NCBI RefSeq assembly: GCF_000143415.4
Contig: NW_003314373.1
Span: forward strand, 493,150-557,149
Reading direction: 5' to 3'
DNA: 64,000 nucleotides
DNA from: Selaginella moellendorffii
Taxonomy: Eukaryota; Plantae; Lycopodiophyta
The notes below the pieces were generated by a model, which saw nothing but the letters and a program-made list of their open reading frames with translations, was not told the origin of the DNA and did no database searches. A program made the translations under genes and the position numbers. Below are positions 19,707 to 64,000 of this stretch, piece by piece. Position 1 is the first letter of the stretch; each line of letters opens with the position of its first letter.

Positions 19707-21746
19707 ATGGAGTGGGAGGAAGAGAGGATAGTGGCGCATCTGGAGGTGCTCGTCGCATTTCTGCGTCGCCACGAGCGCCTGTGGAGAGCGCACGTCGTGG
19801 AATTCTTCCAGGTATGGCGCATTGCGCGACTTTCCCATTTGCGAGCTTAGAAATTTATGCCAATGCAGGGGCGTTTGTGGGAGATTCTGGACACGCGATG
19901 GCTCCTGGCGCTGAGGAGTGCGTCGATGGAGGATCTTCTTCTCCTTCCATCGCATATTTCCAAGGTGAGAGAGAGAAACTCTCGATTCTTTGTTTCTCGC
20001 GCATTAATGGATGGCAAGGAATTGTGGCTTTAGGATTGCTGGCCCAAGACGCTCCAGGATTTTCTTGCAGACGCGCGCTCGCTCTCTCTTTCTCGAGAGC
20101 TGATGGAGACCTCAAAGGTATTTCCCTTCACAAAACCTTGTCATTCACAACGTTTCTTAGCTTCTCTCAGGCGAATCGCTTCCAAGTGTTATAACGCAGG
20201 GCGTGAACGCCAAAAAACTCCACGAGGTATGTCACTCCTCTCCATCGATCGTCTTTGAGAAGACCCGCGTTTAGATTCTTTCCAGATTGAAAGACTTTCT
20301 TCGTTGATAGTAAACATCTCTCGCGTTGTCAACGCTACAGAAATCGTGGACGTCGGTGCTGGCCAGGTAAACATCCATCATTCTCCGGTGTATCATTCAC
20401 GGGCATTTTGTTTCTTCCTAGGGGTATCTTGCGCAAGTCTTGGCGTTCCACCACAAACTTCCAGTAGTCGCAGTAGATTGCTCGGCGCACAACACAACCG
20501 TGACAAACAAACGCGCCGACCGCATCCAAAGATACTACGCTTCTCGCTCCGGTAAGCTTGAGTTGGTGCCATTCTTGTCAACCGTTTCAAAGCATCGTGC
20601 TACACACAGGTCGTGCTGCAAACCCGGGCCCCAAGACCGCAACCTGTCTCCTTGGATCGGGCAACGAGAATGTGTCGCTGGATGCATTCCTGTCGTCCAT
20701 CAGCATCCGCAAGGAAGACGAGCAACGTAGCCACGAACAACACTCCATTGTCTTGGCCGGACTGCATGCCTGTGGAGATCTCTCGGCGAACATGTTGAGG
20801 TGAGGAGCTCGTGCTCGTCCGTAAGTTTGTCACTCTGTAAACTCTGGGTGTGTTGGCAGGACCTTTGTGAATCGCCAGGACGTCACGGCAGTAATCTCTG
20901 TTGGGTGTTGCTACAATTTGTTGTCCGAGAACGACGACAAGTGTGGCTTCCCTTTGAGCAGAGGCATGAAGAGATTGAACTTGCGTCTCGGTGGAGCTGG
21001 ACGTGATCTTGGATGCCAGGTGATCAGTCCCTTGACTTCCCTGTAAAAAGCTAACAATGGATACTTGTAGAGTGCTCACCGCTGGAAAGATATTGGTTGC
21101 GAGATGGCCGTGGCAAACTTCGACGTGCATGCATTCCGGGCTGCTTTTCAGATCGTGAGTGATCTTAATCCGCTCGTTTCTCCTGGTTTACAAACTGGTG
21201 GCGTGCGCAGCTCCTCCATCGCTTTTACCCCGGCATTGCCGTCACCAGTCCTTCGGTCGGTCGCATCGGCAAAGCAAAGCGTCGCAAGCAAATGCGAAAG
21301 CCAAGCTCTGAGTGCCAAGCATGCCACGGGAAAGGTGGCGACGACGCTGGAAAATTCGTGGCGTTCCAGCACTACTCCGCCGAGGCTCTCAAACGACTTG
21401 GCCTTCCCGAGGTCTCGCGGGAGGACTTGGCTGAGATCTGGAAAGAAGTGGAGCCGTTTCAGGTACGCGAGCTTTCTTGGCAGTGGTAGTACTTTACCTC
21501 TCGGTTTCAATGCAGGCACTTGTTGCTCCTTTCTGGTCGTTGAGAAGCGCCATAGCTCCGGTGCTGGAGACGTTGCTACTGATGGACAGGCTGCTCTATC
21601 TCAAAGAACAGGAAAGTGAAGTTCCGTCTTTCAGCGCCATGCTGCTGCCGGTGTTCGACCCTTCTGTATCGCCGCGTAACATGGCAGTTGTTGCTACGAG
21701 GAGAAAATCCGGAGACAAAACTAGTAGTGAGAGCCTGCTTGGCTGA
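19707..21746 (+). CDS. METTL25/RRNAD1-like SAM-dependent methyltransferase, multi-exon
   Basis: Motifs VDVGAGQGYL, AGLHACGDLS, SVGCCYNLL, FPLS and FDP.VSPRN across short GT-AG introns. Confidence 0.85.
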
Positions 21747-22594
21747 TTCGCTGCTCTGCTTCACGGACAAAATCTCTTTCGTTCTGCCAACGAGTTACGT
21801 CCACAAAGACACAAAACGAGAAGCTATAGAGACGTACATGGCAGAATCCAAAGAGTTAAGAAACACCGGTGTTTGTTGCTGCCGGAATTCAGCCTTTGCT
21901 GATGGATGGACCTGTTGTGCTCTGTCGATCATAACTTTGGCCAGAATGATTTGTATGAATGTCCTGGCTATGCCCACTGGGCTCCCGAAACCTCCGGGAG
22001 CCAGAGGTCCGGTGGCCACCCCACCCTGTTCTCTCTATATACATGAGCATCTCATTCTCAGCTATCATGGGATCAGATTTTCTGTAGCTGATCCTGATGA
22101 TCCATCATGCTCCCAGTGACTGATCAACTACAAGCGATACCTCCGGGTTCATGGCGACATGACGAACGGTAGCAGCAGCGCATTCAGCTCGCTGACCTTG
22201 AAATAGTTTGTGCGCAAGGATGTCGTTGAAAAATCGTCGTGGATCGAGCCATCATGAAGAACAAAGAAAGGAGTGAAATGCAAAATCTTGTGCCGGTCCT
22301 TGCAGATTCATTGTTCGCATTGCCATCTTCAGATCCATGGCTACAACACTCACGAATTGATATATCCAGAGTAAACTAAACATTATATTAAAATATTTCA
22401 TCACTTACTGGCCGTTTTTAGAATAGCTCTGGAATTAAAATATTTCGAGCCAAAAGAAGAGAAAGATCCGTGCTTTGAACAAAAGAGCGGGAGGGTCACA
22501 ACGTTCGTAACGAATATACGTTTCGTACTATTTAAGCCATTCCAAGATTATACCCACGAATATACGTTTCGTACTGCCCTGTGTTTAGGGTTTT

Positions 22595-23611
22595 TCAACT
22601 TGGCGTGATCTTGGGGAGCCAAGCAAACATTCTCTTCCAGCCAACATACACGCCCTCGATCACCAATGCAGCCAAATCCGAGGGGGGATAGACCTTAAAC
22701 TCGGCCAGGGCCTCTTCAGTCACGCAATACTTGTCAATCGATCCTTCCATGAGCGGGAATTCGTGCTTCTCCTGCGCTCGAGCAAAGCACTCGTAGTACG
22801 CGCGCTTGTCCACGAAAGGAGGCTCCTCTTCCCTATCCGTAACGAACAAAACATTCGGGAAAGGCATCACGCTCCGGAGGATCGCAGCGAGAAGAACACG
22901 CCCGATCCGCCCATTCCCATCGCGAAACGGGTGGATCCGCTCAAACTCAAAGAAGAATCTGGCTCCAAACTTGAGCAAATCCTCGGTTTGCTCCACACTG
23001 ATCAAGCTTTCTTCCTGGCTCGCCGGGAACATCTCCTCGAGCTCGCGATTCGCGTCCTCGACCAGCTTCTCCAGCGAGCTCTCCACTTGGGTCGGCCACG
23101 TAAAGACGTGAAGGCCGCCAGTCACCATTCTTGTGTAGGCAATCTCGTGGGGATCCTTGCGGAGGCGAGCTGCGATCTTGGGCTTGGTGCTCCTCATGAG
23201 CTCGCCGTGGGCCTCCAAGATCTTGGGAACACTCAGCTTTGGGATCACGATCCCATGGTGGGCTTGATCATCATCTCCTTCTAGCGGCGGAAACATCGCT
23301 CGCAGTGACTTGTGGAGGCAGCGCACGGCCTCGAGCCTGGAATCCGACTGAACGGCGTCTCCCAACGCGAGCGCCCCATTGCAAAAGATGGCATCCCGGG
23401 TCTCGGCGTAGGTGTCGAATCCTTCTTGCTCGATCTTGTTTACCTGGAAAAGATACTGCGCCAATGCTTCCTTTGCGTGAATCTCCATCGCCCAGCGCTG
23501 CTGCTTGTCCGGGAGGCGCTTGAATCTATCCACAAACGCGTGGATTCTTACCACTTGATCGCTTGTGCTCGCCCTCCAGAAAGGAACCTGGGATGCCGCG
23601 TACTTCCACAT
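22595..23611 (-). CDS. Fic/Fido-domain protein (putative adenylyltransferase), intronless
   Basis: 338-aa ORF with the canonical Fic motif HPFRDGNGRIGR, preceded by FFFEFERI. Upstream helix ILEAHGELM and a possible inhibitory helix QVNKIEQEG. Confidence 0.9.
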   Translation of the reverse strand: MWKYAASQVPFWRASTSDQVVRIHAFVDRFKRLPDKQQRWAMEIHAKEALAQYLFQVNKIEQEGFDTYAETRDAIFCNGALALGDAVQSDSRLEAVRCLHKSLRAMFPPLEGDDDQAHHGIVIPKLSVPKILEAHGELMRSTKPKIAARLRKDPHEIAYTRMVTGGLHVFTWPTQVESSLEKLVEDANRELEEMFPASQEESLISVEQTEDLLKFGARFFFEFERIHPFRDGNGRIGRVLLAAILRSVMPFPNVLFVTDREEEPPFVDKRAYYECFARAQEKHEFPLMEGSIDKYCVTEEALAEFKVYPPSDLAALVIEGVYVGWKRMFAWLPKITPS

Positions 23612-23816
23612 AGATATTGAAGAACCCTAAAATTCCACGTCAGCTCTTTAATCCTAGAACCAGGATCTTTTGAGTGCTCAAAGTCGCTTTAAAGTAAACG
23701 CCCTGTTAAAAGTGCGGTCGCCATACCTTTATCTCCAGCTCACGCATTTCACGCACTCTGGGAAGAAGCACACACACCATAGCTTGCGCTCGGTTGGATC
23801 GTTTGTAAGTACAAGC

Positions 23817-25428
23817 ATGATCGTGCTCTCTCGTTCGTTGATTCTGGCACTCCTTGTGATGATCCCACTGCCACTGTCGAGAGCTTTTTATCATGATCAT
23901 CATGCTGCCTGTGCTCTAGCTGCAAATCCAGAGATTTGCATTGCCAGCATGGAAGCACTGGATTTGGATCCCGGCAACGCTGGAAGCTTTGCACTAGCGG
24001 CGGTAGGATCCGCTCGTGACTCCCTGGAGGCGCTGCTTGCATCCACAGCAGAGCTCGATCATGGCGCCGTCTCGTCGAGCAAGCCATCCAGATCCATGAG
24101 GAAAAGGGCAGTGATGCGCGACTGCGTGGAACTCCTCCATGACGCGTCCCGCCTCGCTGCCGATTCACAAGTGGCCATTGGAAGAATGAAAGCGAGCGAT
24201 CTGGTGAATGCTCACACCTGGATGAGTGCTGCTCTCACTTACCATACCACTTGCCTGGATGGATTGATCGAGGCTGGCTTTGACGAACACAAACTGCTAA
24301 ACAAAGCCCGAGAATCACTCAGCACTTGCCTGGCAGCCATAGCATCCTTGCGAAAAAATCAAGAACAGGAGCCACAGATCATCAAAACCCCGCATTGGGT
24401 CTCCAAGTCGGTGGGAAATTACACCATTCTTCCCAACATCACGGTGGCCAAGGACGGGAGTGGCCAGTTCGAGAACATCACTGCGGCTCTTGCCGCTGCT
24501 CCCACGAAGAGCAGCTCCAGGTTTGTGATTTACATAAAGCAGGGAACATACTTGGAGACTTTCGAGGTGCCGAGGAATCTCCTGAACTTGATGTTCTTGG
24601 GAGATGGGATTGGCAAGACCATTATCACTGGAAACAAAAGTGTCCAGGATCCAAACATCACAACTTTTACGTCCGCAACAGTGGGTAAGTGATCACAAAC
24701 GTAACTTTACAAACCTCGCTAATCGATTGATCGATCTTTCAGCTATTAGAGCGAACAATTTCATCGCTCAAGACATCACATTCCAAAACACGGCCGGAGC
24801 CATAAACCATCAAGCGGTGGCGGTGCGAGTGACCGCAGACAAGGTGGCATTCTTCCGATGCTCGTTCGAGGGCTTCCAGGACACCCTCTACGCTCACTCG
24901 CTCCGCCAGTTCTACACCCAGTGCGAGATCTACGGCACCGTCGACTACATCTTTGGCAACGCAGCCGCGATCTTCCAAAACTGCAATCTCTACGCTCGCC
25001 TCCCGATGCCCAAGCAGAAGAACACCTACACGGCGCAGGGAAGAACAGACCCAAATCAGAACACCGGCTTCTCCTTCCAGAACTGCGCCGTGGATGGAAC
25101 GCCGGAGCTCAAGGCAAACATCACCCAGTTCCCGACGTTCCTGGGGAGGCCATGGAAGGAGTACGCGGTCACGGTGTTTCTCAAATGCTACGAGAGCGCG
25201 GTGGTGGATCCGGCAGGATGGCTCGAGTGGAGCGGCGATTTTGCGCTCCAGACGCTCTTCTATGGCGAGTACTTCTGCTATGGGCCAGGCGGCTCGACCG
25301 TCAAGCGCGTTGACTGGTCAACTCAGATATTTGACTCTAGCTTTGCGAGCAAGTACACGGCAATGAGCCTGGTCAACGGGGACGAGTGGCTCCCAACGAC
25401 GAATCTCCCATACACACTGGTGCTATGA
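23817..25428 (+). CDS. PME: Pectin methylesterase with PMEI pro-domain, intron 24685-24742
   Basis: Signal peptide, PMEI motifs (DCVEL, TWMSAALTYHTTCLDG), then VAKDGSGQF, QAVAVRV, QDTLY, GTVDYIFG and LGRPWK. Confidence 0.96.
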
Positions 25429-25553
25429 TCATAGGAAAAGAAAAAGTGGTATCATCAACCTTGACTTATTCAGCTATAGCTACATTGTGCCTATTCCACC
25501 TTTTGTGAGGTGGAATATCACTCAAAATACTTTAGCGTTGTATGATGTGTGGG

Positions 25554-26488
25554 TCAGCTCACTGTTCTTGGCCCTCCAACCGAGGTGGGAACCCCCACGG
25601 CTTGCATATGTTTGAGCGTCGCGGCCAGCCAGTCCAATCCTTCGTACAGACCCTCGCCTTTGATCGCGCAAGCTGCTTGGACGTGCCACCGCCGGTCTCG
25701 CATCTTTCCCAGCCCCAGCACCGCGCAGATCTCCGTGGGAGACATGGCGCCCTTCTGCAAAAACGAAGAGACGAGCGAAAACTTCACTCTCCCGGAGAGA
25801 AACGAAAATCGAAGAGAGTTACCATGTCTTGCTTGTTTGCGAACACCAGGATGGCGCTGTTTCTCATCAGTGGATCGTTCACAATCGCCTGGAGAAAGAA
25901 GTGACGCGAAGGATGTGATGAGCTCCCGGAGAGCTTAAGTAGAACTTGTTTGAAACCACTTACTTGGAATTCCAAGGCGGCTTTGTCGATTCGGTCCTTG
26001 TCGAACGAGTCCACGACATAGATCTGGAGCACGTCTTGTAGATCACAATCGAAAACAAAGAAGGAAATCTAAAACAGTACCAGAGCATCGGTGCTGCTAA
26101 AGTAGTGCTTCCAGAGCGGTCTTAGCTTCTCCTGGCCACCCACATCCCACACCGTGAACACCACATTCTTGTACTGGACCTTCTCCACGTTAAATCCTAG
26201 CAAGGATTCACATCAGTCGAGCAAGAAGGCCAAGATGAAAGCCAAGAAACCAGAAAAAAAGGATTACCAATTGTTGGAACCGTGGAGAGGATTTCCCCTA
26301 TGTGTAACTTGAACAGGATCGTTGTCTTGCCGGCGGCATCCAACCCCAGCATCACTACCTGCAAGAGCCTGCCCGTAAGGATCAGTCCATAGAAGACCGA
26401 GAAGCGCGCAATCAAAAGCCACAGCCATTACCCTCATCTCCTTGTTCCCAAACAAGCTATCGAACAGCTTCCGGAACGTCTGCCCCAT
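25554..26488 (-). CDS. ARFB1: ADP-ribosylation factor, ARFB group, multi-exon
   Basis: [46 protein letters not shown] and [11 protein letters not shown]. Confidence 0.93.
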
Positions 26489-26595
26489 AATCCTCTCGCT
26501 CTCTCTAGCTCCCCGATCGATCGCGCTGATTTCACCCAAGCGCCCTCATCGTCGAAGGTACCAAAGCCCTAGGAAACCCTAATCTTGGAAGAACC

Positions 26596-27849
26596 CTAAA
26601 AACTTTGTCTCACGGGCTTCTCTAGAATCGCCGAGAGATAGACCTCGCGATTGGCCCGATCGAGCTTCTTTCCGACCGCCCACTTGATCCTCCGGAACCC
26701 CAGCCTCTCGATCAGCGGCACATAGAGGGTGTCCAGTTGATCCTCGGTGCAAAAGAAGTGATCCAGCCAGAAGAATCCACCCGGTCGCAGCACGCGATCG
26801 ATGTCGTAGAGCACGAATTCCAGCGATTCCAGCGGGATCCAGTTGCTAAGAACATGCATGGTGTGGACGAGATCTAGGGTGTTGTCGAAGAAGGGCAGGC
26901 GCTGCGAGATCGTGGCGAAGATCGGGACTAGCCCACGCGCCGCGATGAATTCGTTGAAGGGCCCGTTGAGATTGAGCGTGGTGGTGATGATCGTCACTCC
27001 CCGCTCCAGCATTCTCGCCGCAAAGCTCCCAGTCCCTCCGCCCAGATCCAGCCCAATTCGAATGCCACCCTTGGCCAGCGAAAAGATCTCGTCCAGCTCC
27101 TTGGAGCTCACCCATCGCGATCGCTCCGGGCCGGAGAGATCGAAGCAATCAGCGCAATCATAGAAGACGGTCTTGTTCTTGGCCCTGTTCTTGAGGCAAT
27201 CGAAGCTCTTGCACGAGTAGTGGCTCCACAGCACAGATTTGTCGCTGGGGATCTCCCACAGCGATCCCGGGAGGGAGTGTGGCGGGGAGATCGCTGCTGG
27301 GGTCCTGGCGAAGCATCGCCGGCGAGGAAGAGGCTCGCAGCCGCGGAGCATGAGCGATTGGCCGATCCACCAGTCGTCTGGGCAGATCTCCCCTGGCGTG
27401 TAGCCCATGAATCGATCGAGGAGCTCCCTCTGCGCGTAGCACTGGTGCCCAATTGGAGAGGTCATCGTCTCCAGGCCATAGTTTGGATTCCTGCCCAGCG
27501 GGAGCTTCCTTTCTGCCGTGAACTCCACGAGCTCCTTGCTCATCGCGAAATCCCCTTTGTGTTCTTCGTGTTCTTCGCGAGGGTTTCGCGCGCCATGCCT
27601 GCGAATTTCATCCCTGAGCGTCGCCAGCTCCCGGAGAATCGATTCGTCCCCCGCGGCGTGCTGCAAGCTCCGCTGGACGTCGCGCGAGATCGAGAGGCTG
27701 TAGAGCGCGAGAATGTTGGTGACAACGATCGTCGCCAGCAAGAATAGAACTCCGCAACTCCCTCCTCCTCCTCCATTTCCTCCATTCCCAAATCCCAGCG
27801 CTGCCACTAGCGATCTCGTGAAATCCCTGGGTTTGTCTTCCCCTCCCAT
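26596..27849 (-). CDS. Type II membrane SAM-dependent methyltransferase (Methyltransf_29-like), intronless
   Basis: N-terminal TM segment, GCEPLPRRRC, RIGLDLGGGTGSFAARM, RLPFFDNTLDLVH and DIDRVLRPGG. Confidence 0.9.
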   Translation of the reverse strand: MGGEDKPRDFTRSLVAALGFGNGGNGGGGGSCGVLFLLATIVVTNILALYSLSISRDVQRSLQHAAGDESILRELATLRDEIRRHGARNPREEHEEHKGDFAMSKELVEFTAERKLPLGRNPNYGLETMTSPIGHQCYAQRELLDRFMGYTPGEICPDDWWIGQSLMLRGCEPLPRRRCFARTPAAISPPHSLPGSLWEIPSDKSVLWSHYSCKSFDCLKNRAKNKTVFYDCADCFDLSGPERSRWVSSKELDEIFSLAKGGIRIGLDLGGGTGSFAARMLERGVTIITTTLNLNGPFNEFIAARGLVPIFATISQRLPFFDNTLDLVHTMHVLSNWIPLESLEFVLYDIDRVLRPGGFFWLDHFFCTEDQLDTLYVPLIERLGFRRIKWAVGKKLDRANREVYLSAILEKPVRQSF

Positions 27850-33316: not shown

Positions 33317-34410
33317 TTATGGCTTCCTCCATAAAAGAAGCATTGGATTAGCCAGGAGTGGAAATCCACTATTTTCTACTATTAAATTGGTGTGGTTAGC
33401 AATATATTTACAGAAAAATTACTCCATCCATCACATCCCAATAGAACTAAATTTCCATCTTTTTGGAGTGTTTCTTTCTCAAACACTAAATTGCAATTAT
33501 ACTCCAGAACTAGCTGGTAAAGGCCATTTGAAGAAATTAAATGACCCCCTTCATTTATAACTGATTGAAGTGTCTTTATATCTCTGCTAGTCATGGATGA
33601 ATGATATACATTACAATCATTTGGAATAGCTGGAACAGTTTCTCTAGCGTCATTGTACAAAAGATCATTTTGAGAATTTTTGTCATTTGTAGTTAATATT
33701 TTGTATGGTAAGCTGAATAATCAATCTGTATATTACATGCTGAAACCTATACAAAACCATAGTTCTATAGTCAAAACTCTTGCATAGTCCTTCTAGCAAA
33801 AGCTTATTTGCAAAGGTGATGGACACTACAACATCCACTAGTTTCTCTTTTACACATACCTGAACAAATTTTGGACTGCCCCATTAGCTTGGAGGGATTT
33901 AATCTCTGTGAAGTTTAGAATCGTATTCTCCACATTTGCTGTCAGCTAACAATTGGTCATGGTTTCTTAAAGATCTTATATGCCTAGTGTGGTCACTCCG
34001 CACAAATTGGTGATTGTGCATTTTAAAGACAGGAATGCCTTCTGTAAGTAGGCACGCCTCTTGACACAGGGCATGTATGTATGCCCATGCACAATTGTCA
34101 TCCCACGAACTTCTAGAAGTAGTGGCAGATTTGAATGCTTTAGATTGCGATGTCTCACTTTTTTGTTCTTCCTGCTCACTTAACTGAATATGGAACACAT
34201 CTTATAGGATATTAATTCCATTGGCTCCAAACTTTTATTGCTATTTCAATAGAAATTGTTAATCAAATATTATTCTCAATAGTAGGACTTATCTTTTTTG
34301 GACTGTTTAATTGTAACACTACGGCAATACTTTACTAGAAGTCTAGAAGTAATAAATAAAACATTAATTTCCTGATAAGCATCATTTTCTTTTGAGTGCA
34401 TATACTTCTC
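33317..34410 (-). pseudogene. Decayed copy of the B-lectin gene, with an internal insertion
   Basis: Homologous to 43381-44332 (LISSNGLYQLVLEYNCNLV, LQKDGNLVL). It has deletions, stops and a lost start codon. Confidence 0.85.
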
Positions 34411-36656
34411 TATTTTTCAGCAAGGAGAATAAATAGAGGAACTTGCTACATACGCTTGGTTTGCTTGTGTACTTTAAAGAATATTATAACATATACTTTT
34501 TTTACTTTTTTTTAACAGAATGTACAAGAAAACCGGATAAAGATGTTAATAATATAATAAAATATTTAATTTCTATGTCTCACATGTTCAGTTGCAACTT
34601 AAAAAATAACCTATGTAATCAAACTTGACATTCAAGTAGAAGGATTTTATTATTATCCATATTAATGAGGTCATTAACACTTCCTTTTTTTTAAAAAAAA
34701 TGAAATAGTTTTCATGGAGCATCAAAAAGTCATCATGGTCATATTTTATTACTTATGAGATCACAGCTCTTAGCATCATATGAGGATTACAATTTCACTT
34801 CATTCAAATTGAATTGAACTCTAGGGTATTCTACCATATCATTTTGCTTGAGTCAAGGACTAGCCATTTGAGATTCTTATTTGGAAAAGAGTTGTCAATT
34901 ATCCTAAATATTTAATAAAATTTCATAAAGATAATAGAAATAACACAAAGTCATATATATTTTACTAATATTGTGGCAACATTAGCATGAACTTATATTT
35001 AAACATGATCTTGATGAAAAATTAATATATTAATTAAAATCACTCATCCTCCAAAACATCATAGTTGTCATTGCTAATCATAAGTTTAATTGAAAAAAAA
35101 TAATAAGAGGGATTAAATGAGTAGTTTATGTGTTCTTATTTTAATCACAAAATTAAATTGATTTTAACTAAAGCAAACTGTTGGCAGTGAATATGCCTAG
35201 AATATTCTTGAATATTCTGCATCTATTATTATTTATTTAGATTAATCTTGTATTATAATTTATAAATATGTTTATAATTCATAAAAACTTTTAAACACAT
35301 GATTTAGAGGATATCTAGCTAAAATTTCTTTTAACTAAGATTAGTAATATTAATTTATATTAATACTCTAGATAAATTGCTGTGCATTGCATGTAGCAAT
35401 ACTTAGTTTGCTTAATAGTAGTTTTGTGACCATTTTGTGATCTCTTGTTGCACATGAAGAGGTTCATTGAAAAGAAAAAATAAAAATAGATAAGTCACTT
35501 GCATGATAGTGCATCAACTTTTTTTCTATATAGGGTGGGGTTTAATGAATGTTATAAAGAGTTTGTAATGTAATATGAGCCACGTCACTCTTTAGTGCTA
35601 CAATAGATCCCCTCATTGTGCATTTTGAGGATAAAGGTAACCAACCCACAACTCATTCCATTCCTTTTCTTTCTAATCCCTCAAGTTGGATCTCCTCAGG
35701 AATTAGTAGTTAGTAATAAAAGAAAACTATGTTCTTACTATGCTCCTATTTTATTCCTCTCCTAGTGGACCTTGTGACTATGGAAATCATCTGAGTGTCA
35801 GCATGCCCCTCTTCGCATTTGCAGCACTTGTAATGAGGTTTGCAATATGGGCAATAGATAATCCCTTCATCTGTCATTGAACCTTAAGCCTCTCGTTTAG
35901 GGTCACTGATAGCAATGGCTGCAAGGTCACCTTGTGCACCACCATACCCATAACACAAATCAAAATAGAGATCCAAGGCACAAGGCTACCAAGGATGGGA
36001 AGACAACTGGTTCAGTACCAATAGAAGACAACAGCCACAACAAGCACCTCAAATAGGGAGCCAGATCCAGGCACGACCATGCTAGACACCCACAGCATGT
36101 CAAAGGAATATACCACACTAGCCAGATTATAGAACCCACATAAGTAGACCAAAAGACAGAGGGTAAACATGAAATCAACCATTCATCTAGTGGTGAGAAC
36201 TATGGGAAAGCAAACCAACACTCATTGTGTCTAAGGTATGCCATGTGCTTATACCTTCTGCTTGAGCTACACTCAGTTGAGGAATGTAGATGAGGTGATC
36301 TTCAACAAACACTGTGTTGTTGTCAATGACAGAAACCCTATCCACTTCAAGGGCATTGTGAAGCCCATACCTCTCTAACTGCTTGTAAATCTTCTCTACC
36401 AACAGCCCTGCTAGAGGAATTCACACCTTGATCACCTCTGTGCCATCATTGGCTTGCACAATCATTACCATCGGCGCCATAAACACATCTATATCCTAGA
36501 AAGTGAACCCTAGAATGGTGCTTCTAATTATGATAATTATTATTATGATTCATTGCTACTCTATCTTTTGCATTCCTGCATTTATTGATACCATCATCAA
36601 ATCATTCTGTTATTGTATCACAACGTTGTTAGAAAGGTAAGGAAATAGTGAAATGT

Positions 36657-36689
36657 AAATCTATAAATCTATAAATCTATAAATCTATA
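36657..36689. repeat. (AAATCTAT)x4 microsatellite
   Basis: Directly visible. Confidence 0.85.
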
Positions 36690-37899
36690 GTTTATTTTGA
36701 AGTTACAAATTTATCCCTACTAATAATAGAATAAGTTAATGTTCATTTTATTTTGGATTTGATGCATTAATATATATATATTTTTAATGACATTTATCGC
36801 TTGTTGAAGCTTTGAAACTTCGATGGAGTTTTTTAGGGTATTAGCTACTATGATACAGTTAAAATTCTCAATTTTATTTTTGAAGCATAATACAATACTT
36901 CCAAACTTGAAGTTCAAGTTAATAATCACTTAGAAGACTATAGCAATGTGTTAGCAAAGTAGGACTATCATTAAAAATTGAAAACATTAGAGTTTTTTAT
37001 AAGCATAAATCAAATCCCTTTACACTGTGTGTGCATATTACACTCTTTAAACTTAGGAAGATGAATGGTCTCTAGGGTTGGAGGCTGTCTCTCAACACAG
37101 TTAAAAAATGTAGCCTTTCAATGTCTCCACTACTGCATTGATCTTGTGGTGCTACATTTGCTTCAGCCTTCCCAATAAACAATGACCAAGCTTCAAATGT
37201 TATAGGGAAAGTCGACATCATTTCAACAAAAGCTCCATCATAGAATTTAATTAAAAAAGGTTGGGAAGGCTATCTCCCACCAATCCAATCTACATGGCCT
37301 ACACAAGTTGTCCCCATATCTCTAATGGTAGTGCTTGCAACTCTTAGTACCAACTTTCCCACCTCAAAAGATATTCCCCCTGCAGATCCTTATGCAGTGT
37401 TTTACACACCCTTTGCTGGTTGACACCCCTTTGCATTTGTAGTTTATTTCTTGCAGCATCTACCACCCCATGCTTTCTATGGTTGGATTTTCCCTAAATT
37501 ACTTATTAATCCAATTGATCCAATAAAGGTTATAATTATAAGCATGTTTATAATTTATAAACACAAGATTCTTATTGCATATCAACCATTAGATGATAAA
37601 ATAAAAAAGAATATACTAGAAAGGGTTTAAGGAAGTTTATAAATTATAATCATGTTTATAATTATAAATACAAAATTAACTTAAATGAATAACAACTGTT
37701 AGATGGTAAAAAATCCTAGAATATCCAAGCTTATTCTAGGTATATCCACTACCAATAGGTTTGCTTAAGCAAACCACAAAATTAAGAATCTAGGTATCTG
37801 AAGAGACTAGAGAGCTACTCTTGGAACCTACAATAGTGCCAGTTCAAGGAGTACTATGGAGCAATGGTAGGTAAGCAAGTACAACTTTACTTTCAAGAA

Positions 37900-40330
37900 T
37901 GATAGAACTTTTAAATTACATACTGACTTTGGTGTTAACAAGTGTAAAAAAGGATTTCTAGCATGGAAGAGAAGCCTTTGTGAACCACCCAATGTTTGCT
38001 AGGCAATTTCTAGTAGAAAATTGTAAACACTTGCAAGTTTGGTGACAATGTCAATGTTGGAGAGGAGAGTTGGAAGATATTTATTTCACTAGGTGATGGC
38101 TAGAAGTTGTTGGTGGAGGTGGTCATACACCCCATAATTATATAAGACATGGAAAACATCCTCAATCTATGTAAAACTACAATCTAACAAAGACGAAGGT
38201 GGTGAGGGATGTGAGGTCTAACTCACCAGCCCCATTTGAATATGGAGATGGTGATTACTGCATTTGTAAGCTGCAACCTTAGCCAATACTCCAAAGCTTT
38301 TGACATTCATCAATTTTTTGAAATACCAACTCAAGGACAAGGCCAAGTTTAGCAGTCCATTTCTTGAGTTCTACCCACCAACCTCCATCCTGTTTGAACA
38401 TAAGACTGATAGGTTGTATAGAGAGTTTCATTTTTAGATTGCTGAGCCAATACTAGGTTTTTACATAGTTAATTGTCAAGGGCCATAGATTGGACTCAAA
38501 CAAGATGATTAAGTATAACACATCCTTTGTTGTAGCACACGTAGTTTTCACCCTTTATCCTATGCTAATTTAGTATAGAATAACCACAAAGTGGAACCTA
38601 AACCCTTTATGTGATGTTATGTGCCAAATGCCATGTGTCCCAAAGACAACGAAGTGGAACCCGAATTTCAAAGCTTGGGCCATTGAATGAAAGAACAGAG
38701 CCAAACTCCCAAGCTTGCAACCAAGAAACGAAGAAACTGAAGCACAGAGTGACTCCTGAGTTTTCAGCCCAAAGAGCAAAGGGACAGAAGGATAGAGTGA
38801 CTTAGAATAGTCCTAAAGCATTTAACATCCCAATGTTAGAAATACTCTACCAACTAGCATGGTATAGAACTTGGGTTTAAACCCAAGTCAAATGTAAAAT
38901 AAGGACAGCCACACAAATAAGAACTAAATTATACCTTAGGTTAGCTAGCTATACCCAACCTATCTGCTATCTTTACTATATATTTGGAACCCCACACCCC
39001 CAATTGAGGAACACATGTTTTAGTTTTTCACGTTTAGCCACCCTTAGTACTAAAAGGTAGTTTATAGGATTAACTCGAAACTTATTAAATATGGAATGGT
39101 GTTAGATTGTGAATTTGGACATGGGATGAACACCATTATATTCACAACAAACTCTACATTCAATAAATATGCCAAATTAGCAAATCTAGATGCTTTCCAT
39201 AAATAGCATTTGAGACTGAATAGAAATAACATAAAGTCCATGATAGTGAGGGTGTTTGGCAGACATGATAAGTTATCATCTGACAAATATTAAGGGACTA
39301 AACTCAATATTGTAAAGGTTTCTAACACTAGCAAGTGCAAGTCAATAAATAAGTTTCTCTAATCACGTCAAGTATGCTTGACTAATAGCACTTAGAAATT
39401 CCACTTTTATACTCATTTGGTCAAGTGCACATGCGAAGACTAGTTTCTCAACTAGCTTAAGCGGAGATTGAAAAAGGTCCAGCAATACCAACCTTTTGCT
39501 GTCATGGTAGTAAGGAAAGAATATTCAAAAAGACTAGTTGATAGATAACTTTCGATACCCACAGACACATTTGTGACACTTGTATGGAGTTCCTCCATTT
39601 GATTTCAAAGAATGTTAGTCATTCTTAGAGCTGACCTCCATTGCATACAAAGTAACTATGGAGACCTTGGCTATGAAGAATTTCCACTTTACACTCTAGC
39701 TAGTGACAAGAGCATGAAGTGAAAAGTAAACACCTCATACTGCTATAATACAATTTGCAATCCCTGACTTTCAAGGATTGTTCTTGTGAAAAACATACCC
39801 CAAATATTTGTAACTCTCCACTTCCTAAAGTGTAGTGCCACAATAATAGCATATCCTATCTTGCACTTGTCCTAACACCATAACCTGTGTCTTGGTGAGA
39901 TTAACTTCCATGCCGGTGGCATCACAAAACTTGCTTAATGCACCAAGTGTGTTTTGCATTTAGTAGGCTGAGGGAGCCAAACAAAGTATGTCATCTAGTG
40001 AATATAGGCACATTCCCAAAAGTTGGTATGGCATCAGTGTTCTTCCTTTGATCATGGATTCATTGCATCAATGTAAATAGCGAAAAGCTTTGGCAACAAG
40101 GGGCAGCCATGCTGGAATCCAACCTGGTGGCCTATCAAAGATTTGTAGCTGCACAATTCTATAACAGCAGCAATAAGTGGAGTGGGCATTTGAATTTCAA
40201 GCAATCTTTGAATAAGCAAATGTCACGGCACTTGATCAAAAGTTTTGACTAAGTTGACATAGCCAAGGAAGACCACTCAATTGCATCTAAGTTAACAGAA
40301 GAGTGGATATATTGGGCTTCAGCACAGCAA
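37900..40330 (-). mobile_element. Degenerate LINE (non-LTR) reverse transcriptase, split by a solo LTR
   Basis: Minus-strand remnants VNLVKTFDQVP, GFQHGCPLLPKLFAIYID and DDILCLA..LGALSKFCDATGMEVNLTKTQVM. Boundaries are approximate. Confidence 0.75.
38531..39578 (-). mobile_element. Solo LTR, family A
   Basis: Reverse complement of LTR A with both termini. Flanks TTTGT / CTTGT form a TSD with one transition. Confidence 0.9.
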
Positions 40331-40826
40331 CTTTGGAGGTCTGATGGGATCCAGTGCCATAGTCATTCATCCCACCACTCGCAAATCCCAAGGATCCTCT
40401 ACCCTAGATATCATGTCATTTAGGGTAAAAAGTGCTCTCCTATAGTGCGTTATAGCACCTAGCCACAGTTCTACAGAAGCATATAAAGGTGGCCATTCAT
40501 CCTAGTTGCAGACGCTGCCCTTGGTCATCATCATCCACACAAATGGGGAGCGCCTAGGTCCTGGACACAGACACATGTTGTGTTTCTGTCTTTTATAGAA
40601 TAGCCCAATAGCAAGTTGAGCTCAGCTGCACTGTGCCAAAATCTTCTTAGCCGCAAGAAAATCAAATTCAAAATCATGGCTGTCCCTAAACCCTAAACGA
40701 GCTTAAAGTTTATTTACTTTGTAAAACACATCAAATTCATTGTATGACAAAAAAGCATTGGAACCTTCACCCTAAAATGATTTATTTCTTATTTTTATTT
40801 TACTGTTTTTGTTCTGGTTTCTTAAG

Positions 40827-41953
40827 ATGTTGCTCTTAATGCTATTGATGTTGTTTTCTAATGGTACAACTTCTTTCAAGGATAACTTCACTGTAAGATT
40901 TAGATCTTTCTGTTAATCTTTCTCTAAGATACAAACAGCTATCACATTATGAACTCCCCAAAACAAATATTGAGGTAAGTCTTGTAGCTTAAATAAAATC
41001 CTTGAAAAATTGCATAATTTATGCCTAGAAACTTGGTTTAGAGCAATTAAAAGGTATTCACAAGGTAAAAGCTATAAGAAAGTAAAACTTTCACATGTTT
41101 ATTAAATATGTATTCATAGTATGCATTAGGAAGTTTGGTTGGAAACTTTACTGGAGTGACCTCTACACTTAGTGTACAAAATCCCAAAGTTACAGGGGAT
41201 GGACAATCTATATCACAAATATGGATTAGCGATAGTAGCAAAAGAGGAATTCTTGAGGCTGGCTGGCACGTATGTGATGTTCTACATTTAGTAATTATAA
41301 TATATTAAAAAACGTTTTCAGGTTTATCCAATGGTCAGCTCAGGACATTGCCTGTTTATCTACTGGACGGTAATCCAATTCTCTTTTTTAATTTTTTTGA
41401 TAAATATGTTATTGGAAACAGGCTGATCGATATCAAAGCACCGGATGTTTCAATCTCCAATGTAAAGGTTTTGTGCAAGTAGACACTAAAGTTGTTCTTG
41501 GAGGAGTGATATCCCAGAGAGAAATATCACTTGCCATCTCTCAGGTATTAAGGACAAAAATCTCTAGCTTTTAATGGAGTTTTCAATTTCTAGGACAAGA
41601 AAACCCAGAATTGGTGGCTCTTGGTCGATGGCAAGCGCATTGGTTACTGGCCTTCATCGCTACTAAAATCACTCCAACAAGGTGCAAGCTTTGTCGCAGC
41701 TGGAGGCGAGGTTGCAACATTGAATGGTAAAGCCATCTTGCAAATGGGGAGTGGAAAGTTTCCAAGTTCTGGGAAGGGATTTGCTGCATACCATAGAAAC
41801 ATAAGAGTTTCGGATGCTAATCACGTTATCCATGATGCAAGGCTTCAGACAACACTGATCAACACAAATCAAGCTTGCTATGGTATTGGAAACATTCAGT
41901 ATAATCCTCAGTGGGGGTCACATTTCTTCTTTGGTGGACCTGGCTGTTCTTAA
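40827..41953 (+). CDS. Neprosin (DUF239) glutamic-peptidase-domain protein, multi-exon
   Basis: SISQIWI, LEAGWHVYP, LFIYWTAD.YQSTGCFNLQCKGFVQ, NWWL, IGYWP, GGEV, QMGSG and FFFGGPGC. The 5' exon structure is uncertain. Confidence 0.85.
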
Positions 41954-41999
41954 ACCCGCAAAATGTTGTTAAAATAATAATGCCATGGGAACTTAAATA

Positions 42000-42290
42000 A
42001 GAGAATGGCGGCATTTCTCATCAAATCTTACCCAATGCATGGGAGTTGCGCCAGTGAGCCAGAAGGAGTTCTATTGGATCAAGCAGCAGCTTCGATGGGC
42101 AGGCAACACTGGAGATTTGGGTCACGGCAGACGTCTCATCCATGGCACTGGCCTCCGATACAACCGCTTTCTCTCCAATCTCATCATCCAGATGTACGGC
42201 AAGTGCCGGAGCATCAAAGACACTCCGATTGATTGCGCTCATGGATTTCTACTCGATGATCACTACATTTGCCTTGAGCGGGCATCTGCG
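42000..42290 (+). pseudogene. Truncated 5' copy of the PPR gene
   Basis: Homologous to 44806-45135 with deletions. Confidence 0.85.
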
Positions 42291-55785: not shown

Positions 55786-58480
55786 TCCCCCTCCCCCTTG
55801 TGTCTCTTCCCTGTTCTTCCCTGTTCTTCCTGTTTATTTCCTGTTCTACTCTAAAAAACTCTATTCCTTCGTTTAACACCTGGGAATCCGTCAAGACGGT
55901 CTAGCTTCCGTGCTCGGGGAGAAGGAAATCCACTCAGCCCTGCTTGAAATCGATGCTCCTGGCTCCTGGCACAGAATCTCCTGGAAGAAAAATGCCTGTT
56001 ACTCCAAATCCCAAAGATCTACTCCATGCAAGGGCAATAGAATCAAGAATGCAGCTCCTGCCACGACCTAAATCCTCCCAGGCACGCCAGGAAAGCGCGA
56101 ATGCGGCGCAAGGATGCACAAAACACTCGCAAATTCACTCCAAATACCGCTTACCTGGCCGCTGGAATCCCCCGAGATGCATCGAGGAGGCCGGATTGGA
56201 GCCCAACCCTCCCGCAGCTTTTGCGCGATCGATCTGTCGCTCACACAACACCCCTCCAAGGAGCCGCCGTGATGGAGATTATCACTGCCCTAAGCTATGC
56301 TCTAGATCCCTTGCTCTCTATGCTTGCGTAGTCGGGGGGGGGGCCGGCTGGCTATGGCGCTATCACAAAATGTTCTCTCTTTCTCTTGGCTAAAGCAAAA
56401 TGTAAGCTATTGACGGGAAGGAGTTAATCTCGCCCGTCTATTACATGCATCCGACCGAGCAGTTTGAGCCACGTCAGAGAGGCCGTCAAGATTTTCAGTG
56501 GCCCAGATCCGTCCACGCTATCCATAACCAACCGTCTGATCTAGCCCAGGGCAGTAAAAGTCTTACGCGGAAAGTGCCAAGTGACGTGTCGCCATCATCT
56601 ACGTCCGATGGGTATCGAAACGAGATGCCGGTGCCAAGCTTGGGGCATATTCTGTCCGCGTCTCACCCAAATGGATGGTGTCACGTGGGTCGTCAGGGAA
56701 TATTTCTTGTTTGTAGTTAGGATGCGGTTGGCTGCTCGACACGATGTTAAGGTAATGCCGCCACCTTTGATCCAATTTTAGGGTTCTTACTTCTTCCGCC
56801 CAAGAACATTGACTGGATCATAATTCCACCCAGAAAAGTATTAATTTTTAACAATCGCTCGTGCATGCATGTGCCAAACGCCCCAGTGTCAACTCCCGTA
56901 GTAGAAAAATCCGGAAGTAAAGGTTTAAAATGGTCTCGAAGCTGAACAACGTTTTCTTCACTCAAAACTTCATTTTATTGTTCTCAAATTCCTTTGTTAT
57001 ACATCATCTTGCACCTCAAGAATGAATGCATAATCTAGCACTGCTATCTAGAAACCTTGCTTTTGGATTCCTTTTCAAGCAAGAAGAGCAAGGTGGAAAA
57101 AGAGAAGGAATTTCTTCTCAAGCTGGTCATTTCACAAGATTTTAAGGGCACAAGTGGTTGTAAACACAATAATGTATGTAATTATTCGTATTGTATCATG
57201 TCATAAATTATCAGTTCACTTCAAGTTCATTTTTTTTGTCTAGTTAATGCAAAACCAAATGCTTTGTCACCAATTGAGATTCACACATCCATAAACTTTA
57301 AGATCCAGTTGGACGCTTCAAGACCCTCAAAAACATGTATTATTATTCTTTGCCAAGGACTTCAAATCTTACAAGCTTGCATACATGACAATCTCTTTCT
57401 CATACTTGTACTTGATAGGCTTGCACTGTAGTAATTAGAGGAGTTCATGAATGCCGAGAAAGAATAAAAGATTTTGGTGCTCTAGCTCCTCAAGCCACAT
57501 TTTACTACATTATATTTGTTAAAAGCCACTTAATTAGTCATCCACAAAAAAAAGATAAAATCCTAGAACACATAGACATGTGAGTTTAGCTGAAGTATTG
57601 TTTATGAAGTTTATGAAGAATGCAATGAGAAGATGGAGGCATGAGACCATAATGCAATGGATACAAATTGAAAATTTTATCACTTTTAGTCCCTTTAGTC
57701 TTTAGTTCTAGGTACTCACATCTTTTGCTAATACCAAAGCTACTTTTGCTTTTCCAATTGAACACTGAGATATAAAGCAATGGTGACTAATACCTCAATG
57801 ACATTTTATACTTTTACTTTCATGAATGGAAATAATCAGGATCAAAAGAGTGAATTGAAATACTGAGAGTTGAAAAAACAGAAAATAAAAAAAAAACAAA
57901 AGAAATTAAACATAGGTAGAAGGAAATGAAATAGAAGTTAAAAACATGGAAGATGTAATAAGGGAAATAATTTAAAAGTCCCATTTGATTGATCTCACTC
58001 TAAAGTTTATACCTTAATAATATAAATCTTGAATTGATTTAACTTAGCACTATTAATAATCCTCATCTTGAAACCAGCATATTTCTATCCATTACTAAAC
58101 TTGATTTTGCTATGTAGTGTAACTAAAAATCATAATATACAATTAAAAACTTAAGTTTGTATTATATAAAATTTTGCAAGATTTGCAAACAAGATTTGTA
58201 AACTAGAGAAAGCTAGAATATATGACTTTGCTCCTTTTATTTTACGATTTAATTACAGTCTATTTCTTTGATGAGATTTTAACATTTATTAGGTTGAGAA
58301 TATTGACTATATGCCTATATTTACAAATAGATAAGGTATAAATTACAATTTATAAAGTCCTAGTGTACAGATGTAAAGTCCAGATGTATAACTATGATAT
58401 TGTATACTATTATTAATGTAATGGGATTTTGGCAGCTATCATATTGATTTCAATTTAGACCACTTGCTTTTGTATATAAG

Positions 58481-60595
58481 TGTGAGGCACAAATCCCTAA
58501 ACCCCAAAGTGGAGCAGAAAGGGTGTTATATGGTAGTGGTCAAAGTAGAAGTCTAACAAGCGTAACATGTTTGGATCAAAAGCTCCGATTTAGAAAATTG
58601 AGAGTGGGAGTGGAACTCGTGCTCAAAGGATGAGCACGAAGCAATTGATGAATGAATCTCTAAAAAAGGACACAAAAAGGACTGACATATGGAAGTGTTA
58701 GGAATGAGTCCAAAAAGAAGTCCAAGAAGGAGTTCAAGATAAAGTCCAATATAGACCCAAGATAAAGTCTAAAATAGAGTTTGATATGGACGTGAGATGG
58801 ACTCAATATAAACCCAAGATGGAAGCCAAGATGGAGTTTAAGATGGACCCAAGATGAAGTTCGAGATGGAGTCTCATATGAACCCGAGGTGGACTTGAGA
58901 TAGACTCCGAGATGGACCCGAGATGGACCTGAGATGGAATCTAATATGGACCCGAGATGGACTTGAGATGAAGTCCGAGATAGACCCAAGATGGATTCTG
59001 AGGTCGAATCTGAGATGGACATGAGATGGAGTTTGAGATTGAGACTGAGATCAAGATCGAGACCGAGACCGAGATGGAGTCCGAGACCAAGACTAAGACC
59101 GAGACTAAGACCGAGACTAAGTCCGAGTCCGAGTCCAAGTCTGAGTCCAAGTCCAAGTTCGAGTCCAAGGGTGAAAGCCTAAAGCGATTGTCTCCCAGAT
59201 TTGGTGAGCTCTAAAAGTACAATAAAGGGAAAACTCCAGTGGAGCCAATTTGGCCAAAAAAGGCTAATGTTACCAAGGAAGGCTATACCCATGTGTTAGG
59301 TGATAATATAACCATTGAGGAGTCTAAAGTTAGAGTGAATATAAATAGACACTACAAACGAAGTGATTGAAATGAATGAGTGATATCGAAATGAATTATG
59401 AATGAAGTGCTCAAAAAATGAGTATGAAGTGATTAATGAATGCATCTCTAAAAAGGGAAACAAGAAGGATTGACACATGGCAAGTGTCAGGATTGAGTTC
59501 GAGATGAAGTCCAAGATGAAGCCTAAGGTCAAGTCCAAGATAGAGATTGAGACCAAGTCTGAAATCAAGGGCAAAACCAAAACCGAGACTGAGAGCAAGT
59601 TTGAGTCCAAAGACTAATATAAGTCAAGGGTGAAAGCCTAGAGAGGGGGGGTGGGGGTGGGTGCAAGGGGTTCCAAAAGTATAGTAGGGAGAGTGTGGGG
59701 GTAGTGGAATTAGTTTAGCCAAGAAAGACTATTATAACTCAAGAAGGTTATACCTATGTGTTAAGTGACAATATAACCATTGAGGAGTCTAAAGCTAGAG
59801 TGCATACAAACGAATAAATAAAGTAGCTTGGTGAAGTGTTCAAATGTTAGCTCTAGCTCCTTCGGGAGATCAAATGGTCGATGCTCCCAATGCAAGTGTG
59901 AGTGGCACTACCTACTTGGATACTTAGTGTGGCTTATTGGAACCTTGCTCTAACATCATGGCTAGGGCACACAAAAATGGAAGGTGGGGAGAGTACTTAT
60001 AAGGCTTGCATAAGAGTATAGTGTTTCGAAATATCATTTTAGAATCCCAAACTATGGAAAGTAGACCTTTAGTATGGTGACCAAGAATATGGTCACATGG
60101 TGAGGAAGTCCCAAAAGTTAGTGGGCCTTTAAGCCTTGATTCAGTGGCAATATTGGCAAACACAACCATGAATGAAAAGGGATTTGGTGGGGATTGAAAA
60201 AGGGACATTAGGGAAGGGTGTTCCCTTTATTTCTAGGCACCCTAAAGGTGGTAAGGTGTAGTCAAGGGATGACCATTCATGAAAGGATGGCCTAGTCTTT
60301 AAGAGACAATATTGTGATGTAGGTGGTCTTGGACCACCGAAGTGACAAGTGTGAAGGGAATAACCTAAGTATAATGGGCTAATATGTCAATGGTACTTTT
60401 GGGTGTTAGTCATGGGATTGGACACATAAAGCACTTGGACTAAATGCAAAGGATAAGTGATATAAAAGCCATTTACAAGGCTAATATGTCCCCAAATCAA
60501 GAATAAAATTTATGGAGGTTGTGAGTGAAATTCCTCCAAGTAGTTAAAGTTGTGGTTAAGTAACTAAAGTAGAATGGAAAATTTAATGGCTTACA
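58481..60595. mobile_element. Older LTR family B copy with internal duplication
   Basis: Termini TGTGAGGC...GGCTTACA. Collinear with 5986-7649, with a segment re-duplicated at about 59350-59810. No matching TSD. Confidence 0.85.
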
Positions 60596-60929
60596 AAGAG
60601 CTAAATGGGGGGGAAGGGAGTTAGACCCTCTTTTTCAATCAGTTAAGGGCCTTGGGATATCTGGAAATACCAAATTCAAGAGCTTACATTTGGTATTGGA
60701 ATGATTTCAATTTAACTCTATTAATTGGCTAAGGGAATTACACTATATATTGAGATTGATATTTGAAAAGTTTAATTTTCCTTTGGTTGAGATTGACCCA
60801 AGGGGTAAGGCATTAAGAGAGTGGGGTTTTAGGAGAGATATAACTTTCAACTTCCATTCGCAAGGATGTGAACTTGCAAATAAGCATAGTGGATTATAAA
60901 TAACTATAAAGAATTACTCAAGAGATGCC

Positions 60930-63900: not shown

Positions 63901-64000
63901 CTGTTAGGGCTAAAGCAATTGAGTTAAATAGAGTCTAAAGTTAGTATAGAAAAGTGGACGTTGTGCTTTTCCTACGAAAGTGACCCTTGTGCCTTTTTTG
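60930..64000 (+). mobile_element. Older family A element: 5'-truncated LTR (to 61801), PBS and internal region running off the window
   Basis: Collinear with about 2960-5895. The LTR end CACTACA is followed by TTTAGTATCAGAG. Confidence 0.9.
62402..62553. mobile_element. 152-bp insertion, probable miniature solo LTR
   Basis: Absent from the homologous site near 4435. Starts TGTAAC and is flanked by ACGAA / ACAAA. Confidence 0.6.

Follow-up and report, generated by a model that had tools for sequence, protein, structure and literature searches.

The lycophyte Selaginella moellendorffii carries a gene for a Fic-domain protein within a 64,000-nucleotide stretch of its genome (contig NW_003314373.1, positions 493,150 to 557,149; hereafter the window, in whose coordinates all positions below are given). 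The coding sequence occupies positions 22595..23611 on the minus strand as a single exon, and it is quite likely that this is a bona fide nuclear gene, intronless and served by a divergent promoter, which encodes a soluble enzyme of the Fic fold and belongs to an old family of lycophytes and ferns. The product is predicted to be an autoinhibited and possibly bifunctional cytosolic AMPylase/deAMPylase. An intact and expressed plant Fic gene contradicts a statement common in the AMPylation field, that plants have no Fic protein; a 2025 review gives the eukaryotic FIC protein as absent from plants and fungi (PMC12409994). An in-silico survey from 2015 places unnamed 'plant' Fic proteins together with Dictyostelium, fungal and bacterial ones in a clade of mixed composition (PMC4454073), and none of the papers searched treats Selaginella jointly with Fic, Fido or AMPylation. 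The gene is new and uncharacterised, but the kind of enzyme is known, and automatic database labels anticipate it in part. An earlier note on this DNA, written from the letters of the window, knew of no characterised flowering-plant member; no plant member of any kind is characterised, and the flowering-plant frame does not suit a lycophyte host.

The open reading frame (ORF) starts with ATG, runs for 338 codons to a stop without internal stops and encodes a protein of 38.9 kDa. Its catalytic motif HPFRDGNGRIGR, H227-P-F-R-D-G-N-G-R-I-G-R238 (22898..22933, minus strand), matches HPFx(D/E)GNGRxxR at every residue when read from the ORF, and the earlier description of a 338-residue single-exon frame with a perfect Fic motif therefore stands. 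The comparison with hidden Markov model PF02661 (Fic/DOC) that had been proposed as a check gives 60.6 bits over residues 126-245, where 24 bits is the cutoff. Across a 64-sequence family alignment, H227, F229, G232, N233, G234, R235 and R238 are invariant and E61, T71, H135, G148, F223, P228, D231 and L240 nearly so. Fic is the sole family found in a Pfam scan of the ORF, with no tetratricopeptide repeat (TPR) at E values up to 1, and the protein has no N-terminal membrane anchor or signal, the maximum 19-residue hydropathy (1.87) lying in the Fic core helix 239-257. Hydropathy and Pfam thus agree with the initial reading that signal peptide, transmembrane segment and TPRs are missing, and the protein is predicted to be soluble and cytosolic. 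The named bacterial Fic equivalogs of NCBIfam (SoFic, NmFic, VbhT, VopS and Doc) were considered as assignments and rejected. The ORF scores far under all of their cutoffs (19.3 bits against 38.65 in the case of TIGR01550 Doc), which places the gene outside those families. The Doc kinase and AnkX phosphocholine transferase types have deviant motifs, that of Doc ending in NKR and that of AnkX reading DANGR without the final Arg. The canonical GNGR..R motif sets the Selaginella protein apart from both types.

RNA evidence comes from assembled contigs of four runs, belonging to four studies, which were aligned to window positions 20900-26800. Neighbouring genes show GT..AG joints at 21017/21069, 21154/21211, 21459/21513 and 24683/24742 and CT..AC joints at five sites between 25754 and 26429, bearing out the description of the flanking plant genes as intron-containing. 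Since these joints are canonical and no contig of the four runs covers the intergenic positions 22082-22475, the runs are RNA. Through the Fic ORF the contigs are uninterrupted, and the gene is thus transcribed as an unspliced mRNA in all four studies, which answers the call for an expression check. The minimum mature transcript extends over 22528..23633 (minus strand; X1 record 2, 2 mismatches, 0 gaps), with 22 nt of 5' untranslated region (UTR) and 67 nt of 3' UTR seen, and contigs X5, X6 and X7 span 22621/22683-23529. No canonical splice joint occurs inside the ORF in the contigs of the four runs. The sole joint that touches it, found in one run, skips 1099 nt between non-canonical CA..CA ends, has a 20-nt side and most probably reflects a chimeric contig. 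Each of the four runs also has a contig that agrees with the window as far as 23082, or from 24083 on, and beyond that point passes into unrelated sequence (GATCGGAGATCGCTGTC... and GTTCATGAAAGTTACC...); chimerism, a graph branch or the transcript of a paralogue could account for these breaks.

The best protein match of the gene is SELMODRAFT_414686 (public model P0001), with 98% identity over the shared alignment columns. Scaffold GL377589.1 of assembly GCA_000143415.2 holds the same gene as an uninterrupted 334-residue ORF among conserved neighbours, which are a divergent pectin methylesterase inhibitor (PMEI)-pectinesterase, an Arf GTPase and Methyltransf_29 on one side and Methyltransf_32 and a polyphenol oxidase on the other. 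The two ORFs differ at 13 codons, so the scaffold copy is either the other haplotype or another assembly, and the window gene appears to be an allele or haplotype partner of SELMODRAFT_414686. At position 23068 the window has T and all four RNA runs have C, which changes Lys183 to Glu as in the GL377589.1 allele (EELVED vs EKLVED); the sequenced plants therefore carry the other allele at this site.

The deposited model P0001 is 247 amino acids long, begins at Met43, lacks F215-R260 and has zero Pfam matches. The missing segment corresponds to a phantom intron at 22833..22970 (minus strand; 138 nt, GT..AG, in frame), which deletes F215-R260 including the whole Fic motif and through which the RNA contigs read. 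A true intron or exitron at 22833-22970 was entertained, and is unsupported by the contigs of the four studies, which may drop rare isoforms. The paralogues have uninterrupted genomic ORFs as well (SELMODRAFT_407185, 363 amino acids; 444864, 356; 422537, 349; 418963, 341; 411522, 313), and all five carry HPFxDGNGRxGR and match Pfam Fic at 42-53 bits (42-58 bits for the paralogues overall); their deposited models, of 221-330 amino acids, all lack the motif. In the public models of six out of six intact loci of the subfamily to which the window gene belongs, the motif is excised as an intron, and the error of annotation is systematic. None of the protein collections searched contains the window gene's product at full length, and the absence of the motif from the public models leaves the subfamily without a Fic label. 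Domain-based surveys are blind to the subfamily, the catalytic motif being excised from the models that they read.

In Fic enzymes the motif His acts as the general base and two Arg residues bind phosphates, while an inhibitory Glu, by pairing with the second motif Arg, forces ATP into a non-productive pose. The same Glu is needed by FICD for deAMPylation of BiP, and Glu-intact FICD is chiefly a deAMPylase. A segment of the inhibitory-helix type is found in the Selaginella protein at V57-N-K-I-E61-Q62 (23426..23443, minus strand), where E61 lies just after helix 35-60 and aligns with E234 of FICD (TVAIEG) and with the Glu of bacterial SNAIEN. The earlier note had likened QYLFQVNKIEQEG to the auto-inhibitory helix of class II Fic proteins. 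That segment is real and conserved, and its nearly invariant Glu is E61; E63-G64 was rejected as the inhibitory pair, E63 being Gly in Adiantum P0005 and E61 being the residue that aligns with the Glu of bacteria, FICD and the eukaryotic PxWR proteins described below. Paralogues 407185 and 444864 have VN[KH]IEG, in which the Gly fits the (S/T)xxxE(G/N) consensus and the Ser/Thr position does not, and some PxWR relatives have SNLGEG or TNIAEG.

The AlphaFold2 model of the protein (predicted local distance difference test score 87.8, predicted template modelling score 0.90) shows the all-helical Fic fold with confidence, with helices flanking the motif loop and a beta-hairpin flap at 159-169 (strands 159-161 and 167-169). 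When the 64-sequence family profile is compared with solved structures, human FICD ranks best (E 1.5e-38, 136 bits, profile positions 32-267), followed by C. elegans FIC-1, BT_2513, Dde_2494 and CdFic, and Foldseek likewise places FICD and FIC-1 on top (template modelling score ~0.58) and matches over 40 Fic structures at probability 1.00. A shape search of the Atlas was non-discriminating, returning only generic Fic folds, bacterial Fic proteins with a helix-turn-helix domain and chordate FICD. The metazoan proteins (human FICD, also called HYPE, and C. elegans FIC-1) share with the Selaginella protein the complete Fic motif, the aligned inhibitory Glu and the flap. However, FICD has an N-terminal membrane anchor and two TPR motifs ahead of its Fic domain, and the window protein has neither; identity between the two is ~17-19%, and the PxWR and EGVYVGWKR elements of the plant protein fall outside the alignment. 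FICD is an AMPylase/deAMPylase of BiP in the lumen of the endoplasmic reticulum and single-copy in animals, whereas the plant protein is predicted to be cytosolic and Fic genes are multi-copy in Selaginella. The initial impression that the protein does not look like FICD thus holds for its architecture and fails for its relationships, FICD being the closest solved relative by both profile and fold. By the chemistry of the family, the window protein would transfer AMP, or another nucleoside monophosphate (NMP), from a nucleotide triphosphate to Ser, Thr or Tyr hydroxyls of its targets with His227 as the base. Until relieved, E61 would keep hold of Arg238 and prevent ATP from binding productively; it may, as in FICD, also support the reverse reaction of deAMPylation. 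FICD and SoFic are described as bifunctional in published abstracts.

At least ten Fic loci are scattered among plant genes in the S. moellendorffii genome, and the subfamily of the window gene comprises six intact Selaginella paralogues, all of them intronless, together with fern orthologues. An exhaustive profile search gave 4022 matches at E <= 1e-3, of which 12 reach E <= 1e-30. The labelled matches in this top tier are all from Selaginella or the fern Adiantum nelumboides, and the search returned no labelled bryophyte or seed-plant member. A word-index protein search had suggested a very small family whose next relatives were bacterial, which the exhaustive search exposes as an artefact of sensitivity. 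More divergent Selaginella members do carry labels, either 'adenosine monophosphate-protein transferase fic-1' in RefSeq (XP_024542721.1, XP_024515747.1) or 'Fido domain-containing protein' in UniProt (SELMODRAFT_425001, 424999 and 421387; under this label stand the accessions D8SRP9, D8SRP7 and D8SF41), and several of them lie on one 987-kb scaffold. Four of these proteins (XP_024542721.1, D8SRP9, D8SRP7 and D8SF41) share plant clade, motif and genome with the window protein but belong to other subfamilies and are only ~26-32% identical to it.

The 12 plant sequences of a careful maximum-likelihood tree form one clan (99/91), in which the window's subfamily is supported at 100/99, and plant monophyly has support of 97 in a quick tree (Shimodaira-Hasegawa-like approximate likelihood ratio test). 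A fern clade joins Selaginella 418963 and 411522 (94/86), separate from 414686, 407185, 444864 and 422537 (98/85). Two sequences, P0004 (SRR4210093) and P0006 (SRR17638748/52/53), group with Adiantum P0005 (100/99) and are 'fern-like' by that grouping only. As the ferns are nested among Selaginella paralogues, at least one duplication is older than the lycophyte-fern split, and the gene would have been present, already in several copies, in the lycophyte-fern ancestor. Comparison of the paralogues points the same way: the proportion of synonymous differences (0.64-0.90) is saturated and that of non-synonymous differences lower (0.20-0.46), which indicates that the duplications are old and the copies constrained. 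The ratio of non-synonymous to synonymous substitution rates (dN/dS), which had been suggested as a check on the paralogues, is ~0.16 for the closest pair (414686/407185), a rough value because dS is saturated, and in this comparison the allele pair differs at 13 sites only. Purifying selection appears to act on the copies of the subfamily. A broad, vertically inherited plant orthogroup, which the earlier note had named as a refuting outcome, is found in part, since the family extends over lycophytes and ferns and some members have automatic Fido or fic-1 labels.

Three of the paralogues have features of their own. SELMODRAFT_407185 (GL377571.1, L001:4001-5092) begins MLLRFILAIALVIAVDARA/SG, which is signal-peptide-like (19-residue Kyte-Doolittle hydropathy 2.02, AxA site), and its haplotype partner P0003 has an identical N-terminus; this paralogue may enter the secretory pathway, like FICD. 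SELMODRAFT_418963 (GL377605.1, L011:2501-3526) ends ...DDRPKKRRRKSDKRS, a basic cluster resembling a nuclear localisation signal that does not occur in the window protein. SELMODRAFT_417825 (GL377601.1, L013:2918-3550), situated between two 2OG-Fe(II) oxygenase genes, is open until just before the Fic motif, where it stops (...DTLLKLFIVNTNVAYF), and is probably a truncated or disrupted paralogue.

Beneath the plant tier of the exhaustive search lie many proteins of 300-400 amino acids that score 80-124 bits and align from profile position 2-3 on, and the best non-plant scores are those of eukaryotic-type proteins. An unnamed group, defined here as the PxWR Fic family and homologous to the window protein along its entire length, has in common with the plant proteins PxWR..TS, [S/T/V]-N-x-x-E-x-x-G..T, HPFxDGNGRxxR, (T/M)PFP and a C-terminal P..L.A..EG.[YW].GW[KR] helix. 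All three elements particular to the family are present in the window protein. The N-terminal one is PFWR at residues 10-13 (P10-F-W-R13; 23573..23584, minus strand), the second is MPFP at 249-252, after the Fic motif, and the third is EGVYVGWKR at 319-327, part of the C-terminal element E319-G-V-Y-V-G-W-K-R-M-F329 in helix 311-335 (22625..22657, minus strand), which is found in the eukaryotic family and not in the prokaryotic clade considered below. The PxWR proteins are nevertheless only 20-28% identical to the window protein, most have HPFxDGNGRxCR where plants have xGR, and the plant clan is separate from them (99/91) rather than nested within them. Labelled members are eukaryotic, namely the 'FICD-like' P0340, encoded on a 40-Mb scaffold of the sponge Dysidea avara, and the EukProt entry P0118, and the nearest Atlas clusters are 100% Eukaryota with Mollusca commonest and 98% Eukaryota with Ascomycota commonest. 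Two ENA contigs, ERZ25069326 and ERZ25071859 (L008:138-6927 and L009:3881-7029), which are gene-sparse and 0.55-0.62 Mb long, carry tandem arrays of 2-3 PxWR-type Fic genes with an SH2 fragment near; the arrays come from a eukaryote with an expanded PxWR family.

A prokaryotic clade of ~290-residue proteins with Marinimicrobia, Gammaproteobacteria and Nanoarchaeota labels resembles the window protein in size, fold and motif and has the canonical SNAIEN, but the PxWR, TPFP and C-terminal GWK elements are all missing from it, and its C-terminal extension is of another kind. Bacterial class II Fic proteins (BT_2513, 3cuc; Dde_2494, 4rgl; CdFic, 4x2c; SoFic, 3eqx) likewise share fold and motif, and their SNAIEN matches VNKIEQ column for column; bacterial proteins reach at most 72 bits in the word search, the closest being ~25-30% identical to the window protein. 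In the careful tree the prokaryotic (98/99), plant (99/91) and PxWR (98/86) clans are all distinct, with the plants and the PxWR eukaryotes on the same side. We infer that the plant clade belongs with the non-FICD eukaryotic PxWR family, and there is no sign in these sequences of a recent or lineage-specific transfer from bacteria.

The earlier note had favoured horizontal acquisition followed by domestication, that is, entry of a bacterial Fic gene into the lycophyte-fern ancestor or into both lineages separately, and this we judge unlikely. By far the most Fic genes are bacterial, with a patchy occurrence in eukaryotes, the window gene and all six intact subfamily paralogues checked are intronless, and the labelled matches of the exhaustive search skip bryophytes and seed plants, all of which would suit a transfer. 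The quick tree, moreover, joins the plants to the prokaryotic clade, weakly (support 84, branch 0.09), and the 2015 survey infers several bacterium-to-eukaryote transfers, one of the clades including 'plant' sequences (PMC4454073). In the careful tree, however, a 98/99 branch lies between the prokaryotic clade and the plants plus the eukaryotic family. The PxWR, TPFP and GWK elements connect the plants with eukaryotic proteins and not with those of the prokaryotic clade, the top non-plant matches are eukaryotic-type, and the gene has the composition and codon use of its neighbours. The saturation of dS among paralogues and the nesting of ferns within them mean that a transfer, if there was one, would predate the separation of lycophytes and ferns. 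Horizontal acquisition is thus without positive evidence, set against an ancient multi-copy lycophyte-fern clade whose nearest kin are eukaryotic. An intronless gene of a mostly bacterial family might also be bacterial contamination or a mis-assembled insert, the probability of which is practically negligible. As had been argued from the flanking genes, simple contamination does not fit: the same gene and neighbours recur on the independent scaffold of GCA_000143415.2, transcripts occur in four studies beside those of spliced neighbours, and the 5' region has plant cis-motifs. The GC content at third codon positions is host-like (0.705, inside the neighbours' 0.66-0.82), relative synonymous codon usage correlates with that of the neighbours (r = 0.73), at least ten paralogous loci lie among plant genes and the closest bacterial proteins are distant.

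It is also conceivable, if improbable, that the Fic fold here serves another role, the protein being mainly a deAMPylase, a UMP, GMP or phosphocholine transferase, or a constitutively active enzyme. VNKIEQ departs from (S/T)xxxE(G/N) at both the Ser/Thr and the Gly/Asn position, FICD itself is chiefly a deAMPylase, and AvrAC transfers UMP with a canonical motif. Against this, the full HPFxDGNGRxxR is the signature of NMP transfer, from which AnkX and Doc deviate, and the near-invariance of E61 over 64 sequences argues that this residue keeps a role. Several points nonetheless weigh against the preferred reading of an autoinhibited AMPylase from an old lycophyte-fern family with eukaryotic kin. 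VNKIEQ fits the inhibitory consensus at the Glu only, with Val for Ser/Thr and Gln for Gly/Asn, so autoinhibition may be weaker or work differently. The enzyme activity of the plant members is predicted from homology, and the best guess at a target, Hsp70-type chaperones, is drawn by analogy from FICD. Members of the PxWR family are mostly unlabelled metagenome or transcriptome proteins, whose eukaryotic origin is read from a few labels (Dysidea avara, EukProt, Atlas taxa) and from contig context. The tree is unrooted, samples bacteria to a limited extent and leaves FICD out, and the RNA contigs speak to presence rather than to level, strand or rare isoforms.

These results tie the plant genes to a eukaryotic Fic family distinct from FICD, large and uncharacterised, with members in sponges, molluscs, fungi and protists. 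The genes offer a tractable system for asking about the role of Fic in a photosynthetic eukaryote and about the reason for its apparent absence from seed plants. A more far-reaching proposal, speculative and somewhat doubtful, is that an old and enlarged complement of FICD-like bifunctional AMPylases/deAMPylases survives in lycophytes and ferns, seed plants having lost it. Its paralogues would work in the cytosol (the window gene), the secretory pathway (407185) and the nucleus (418963), tuning Hsp70-class chaperones or other targets. If true, plants would have an AMPylation system that the field says does not exist, masked by gene models from which the motif has been excised.

Upstream of the Fic gene lies the divergently transcribed PMEI-pectinesterase gene (23817..25428, plus strand; 517 amino acids), with one 58-nt GT..AG intron at 24684-24741. 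The two ATG codons, at 23611 and 23817, are separated by a divergent promoter and 5' UTR region of 205 bp common to the Fic and pectin methylesterase genes (23612..23816), with transcript ends at 23633 and 23791/23804. The spacing of about 205 bp and the two intervening motifs reported earlier are both recovered. A telo-box, AACCCTAA, is located at 23623-23630 and an ACGT element, CCACGTCA, at 23635-23642, and both exceed their expected numbers in the window (9 where 1.9 are expected and 8 where 1.07 are, respectively). A second telo-box (minus strand) stands at 22585-22592, 3 nt past the Fic stop codon. Over the window as a whole, AT-rich blocks (GC 0.28-0.38) at 1-2000, 34000-42000 and 58000-64000 alternate with gene-rich sequence of GC 0.50-0.56, and there is a strong positive GC skew at both ends.

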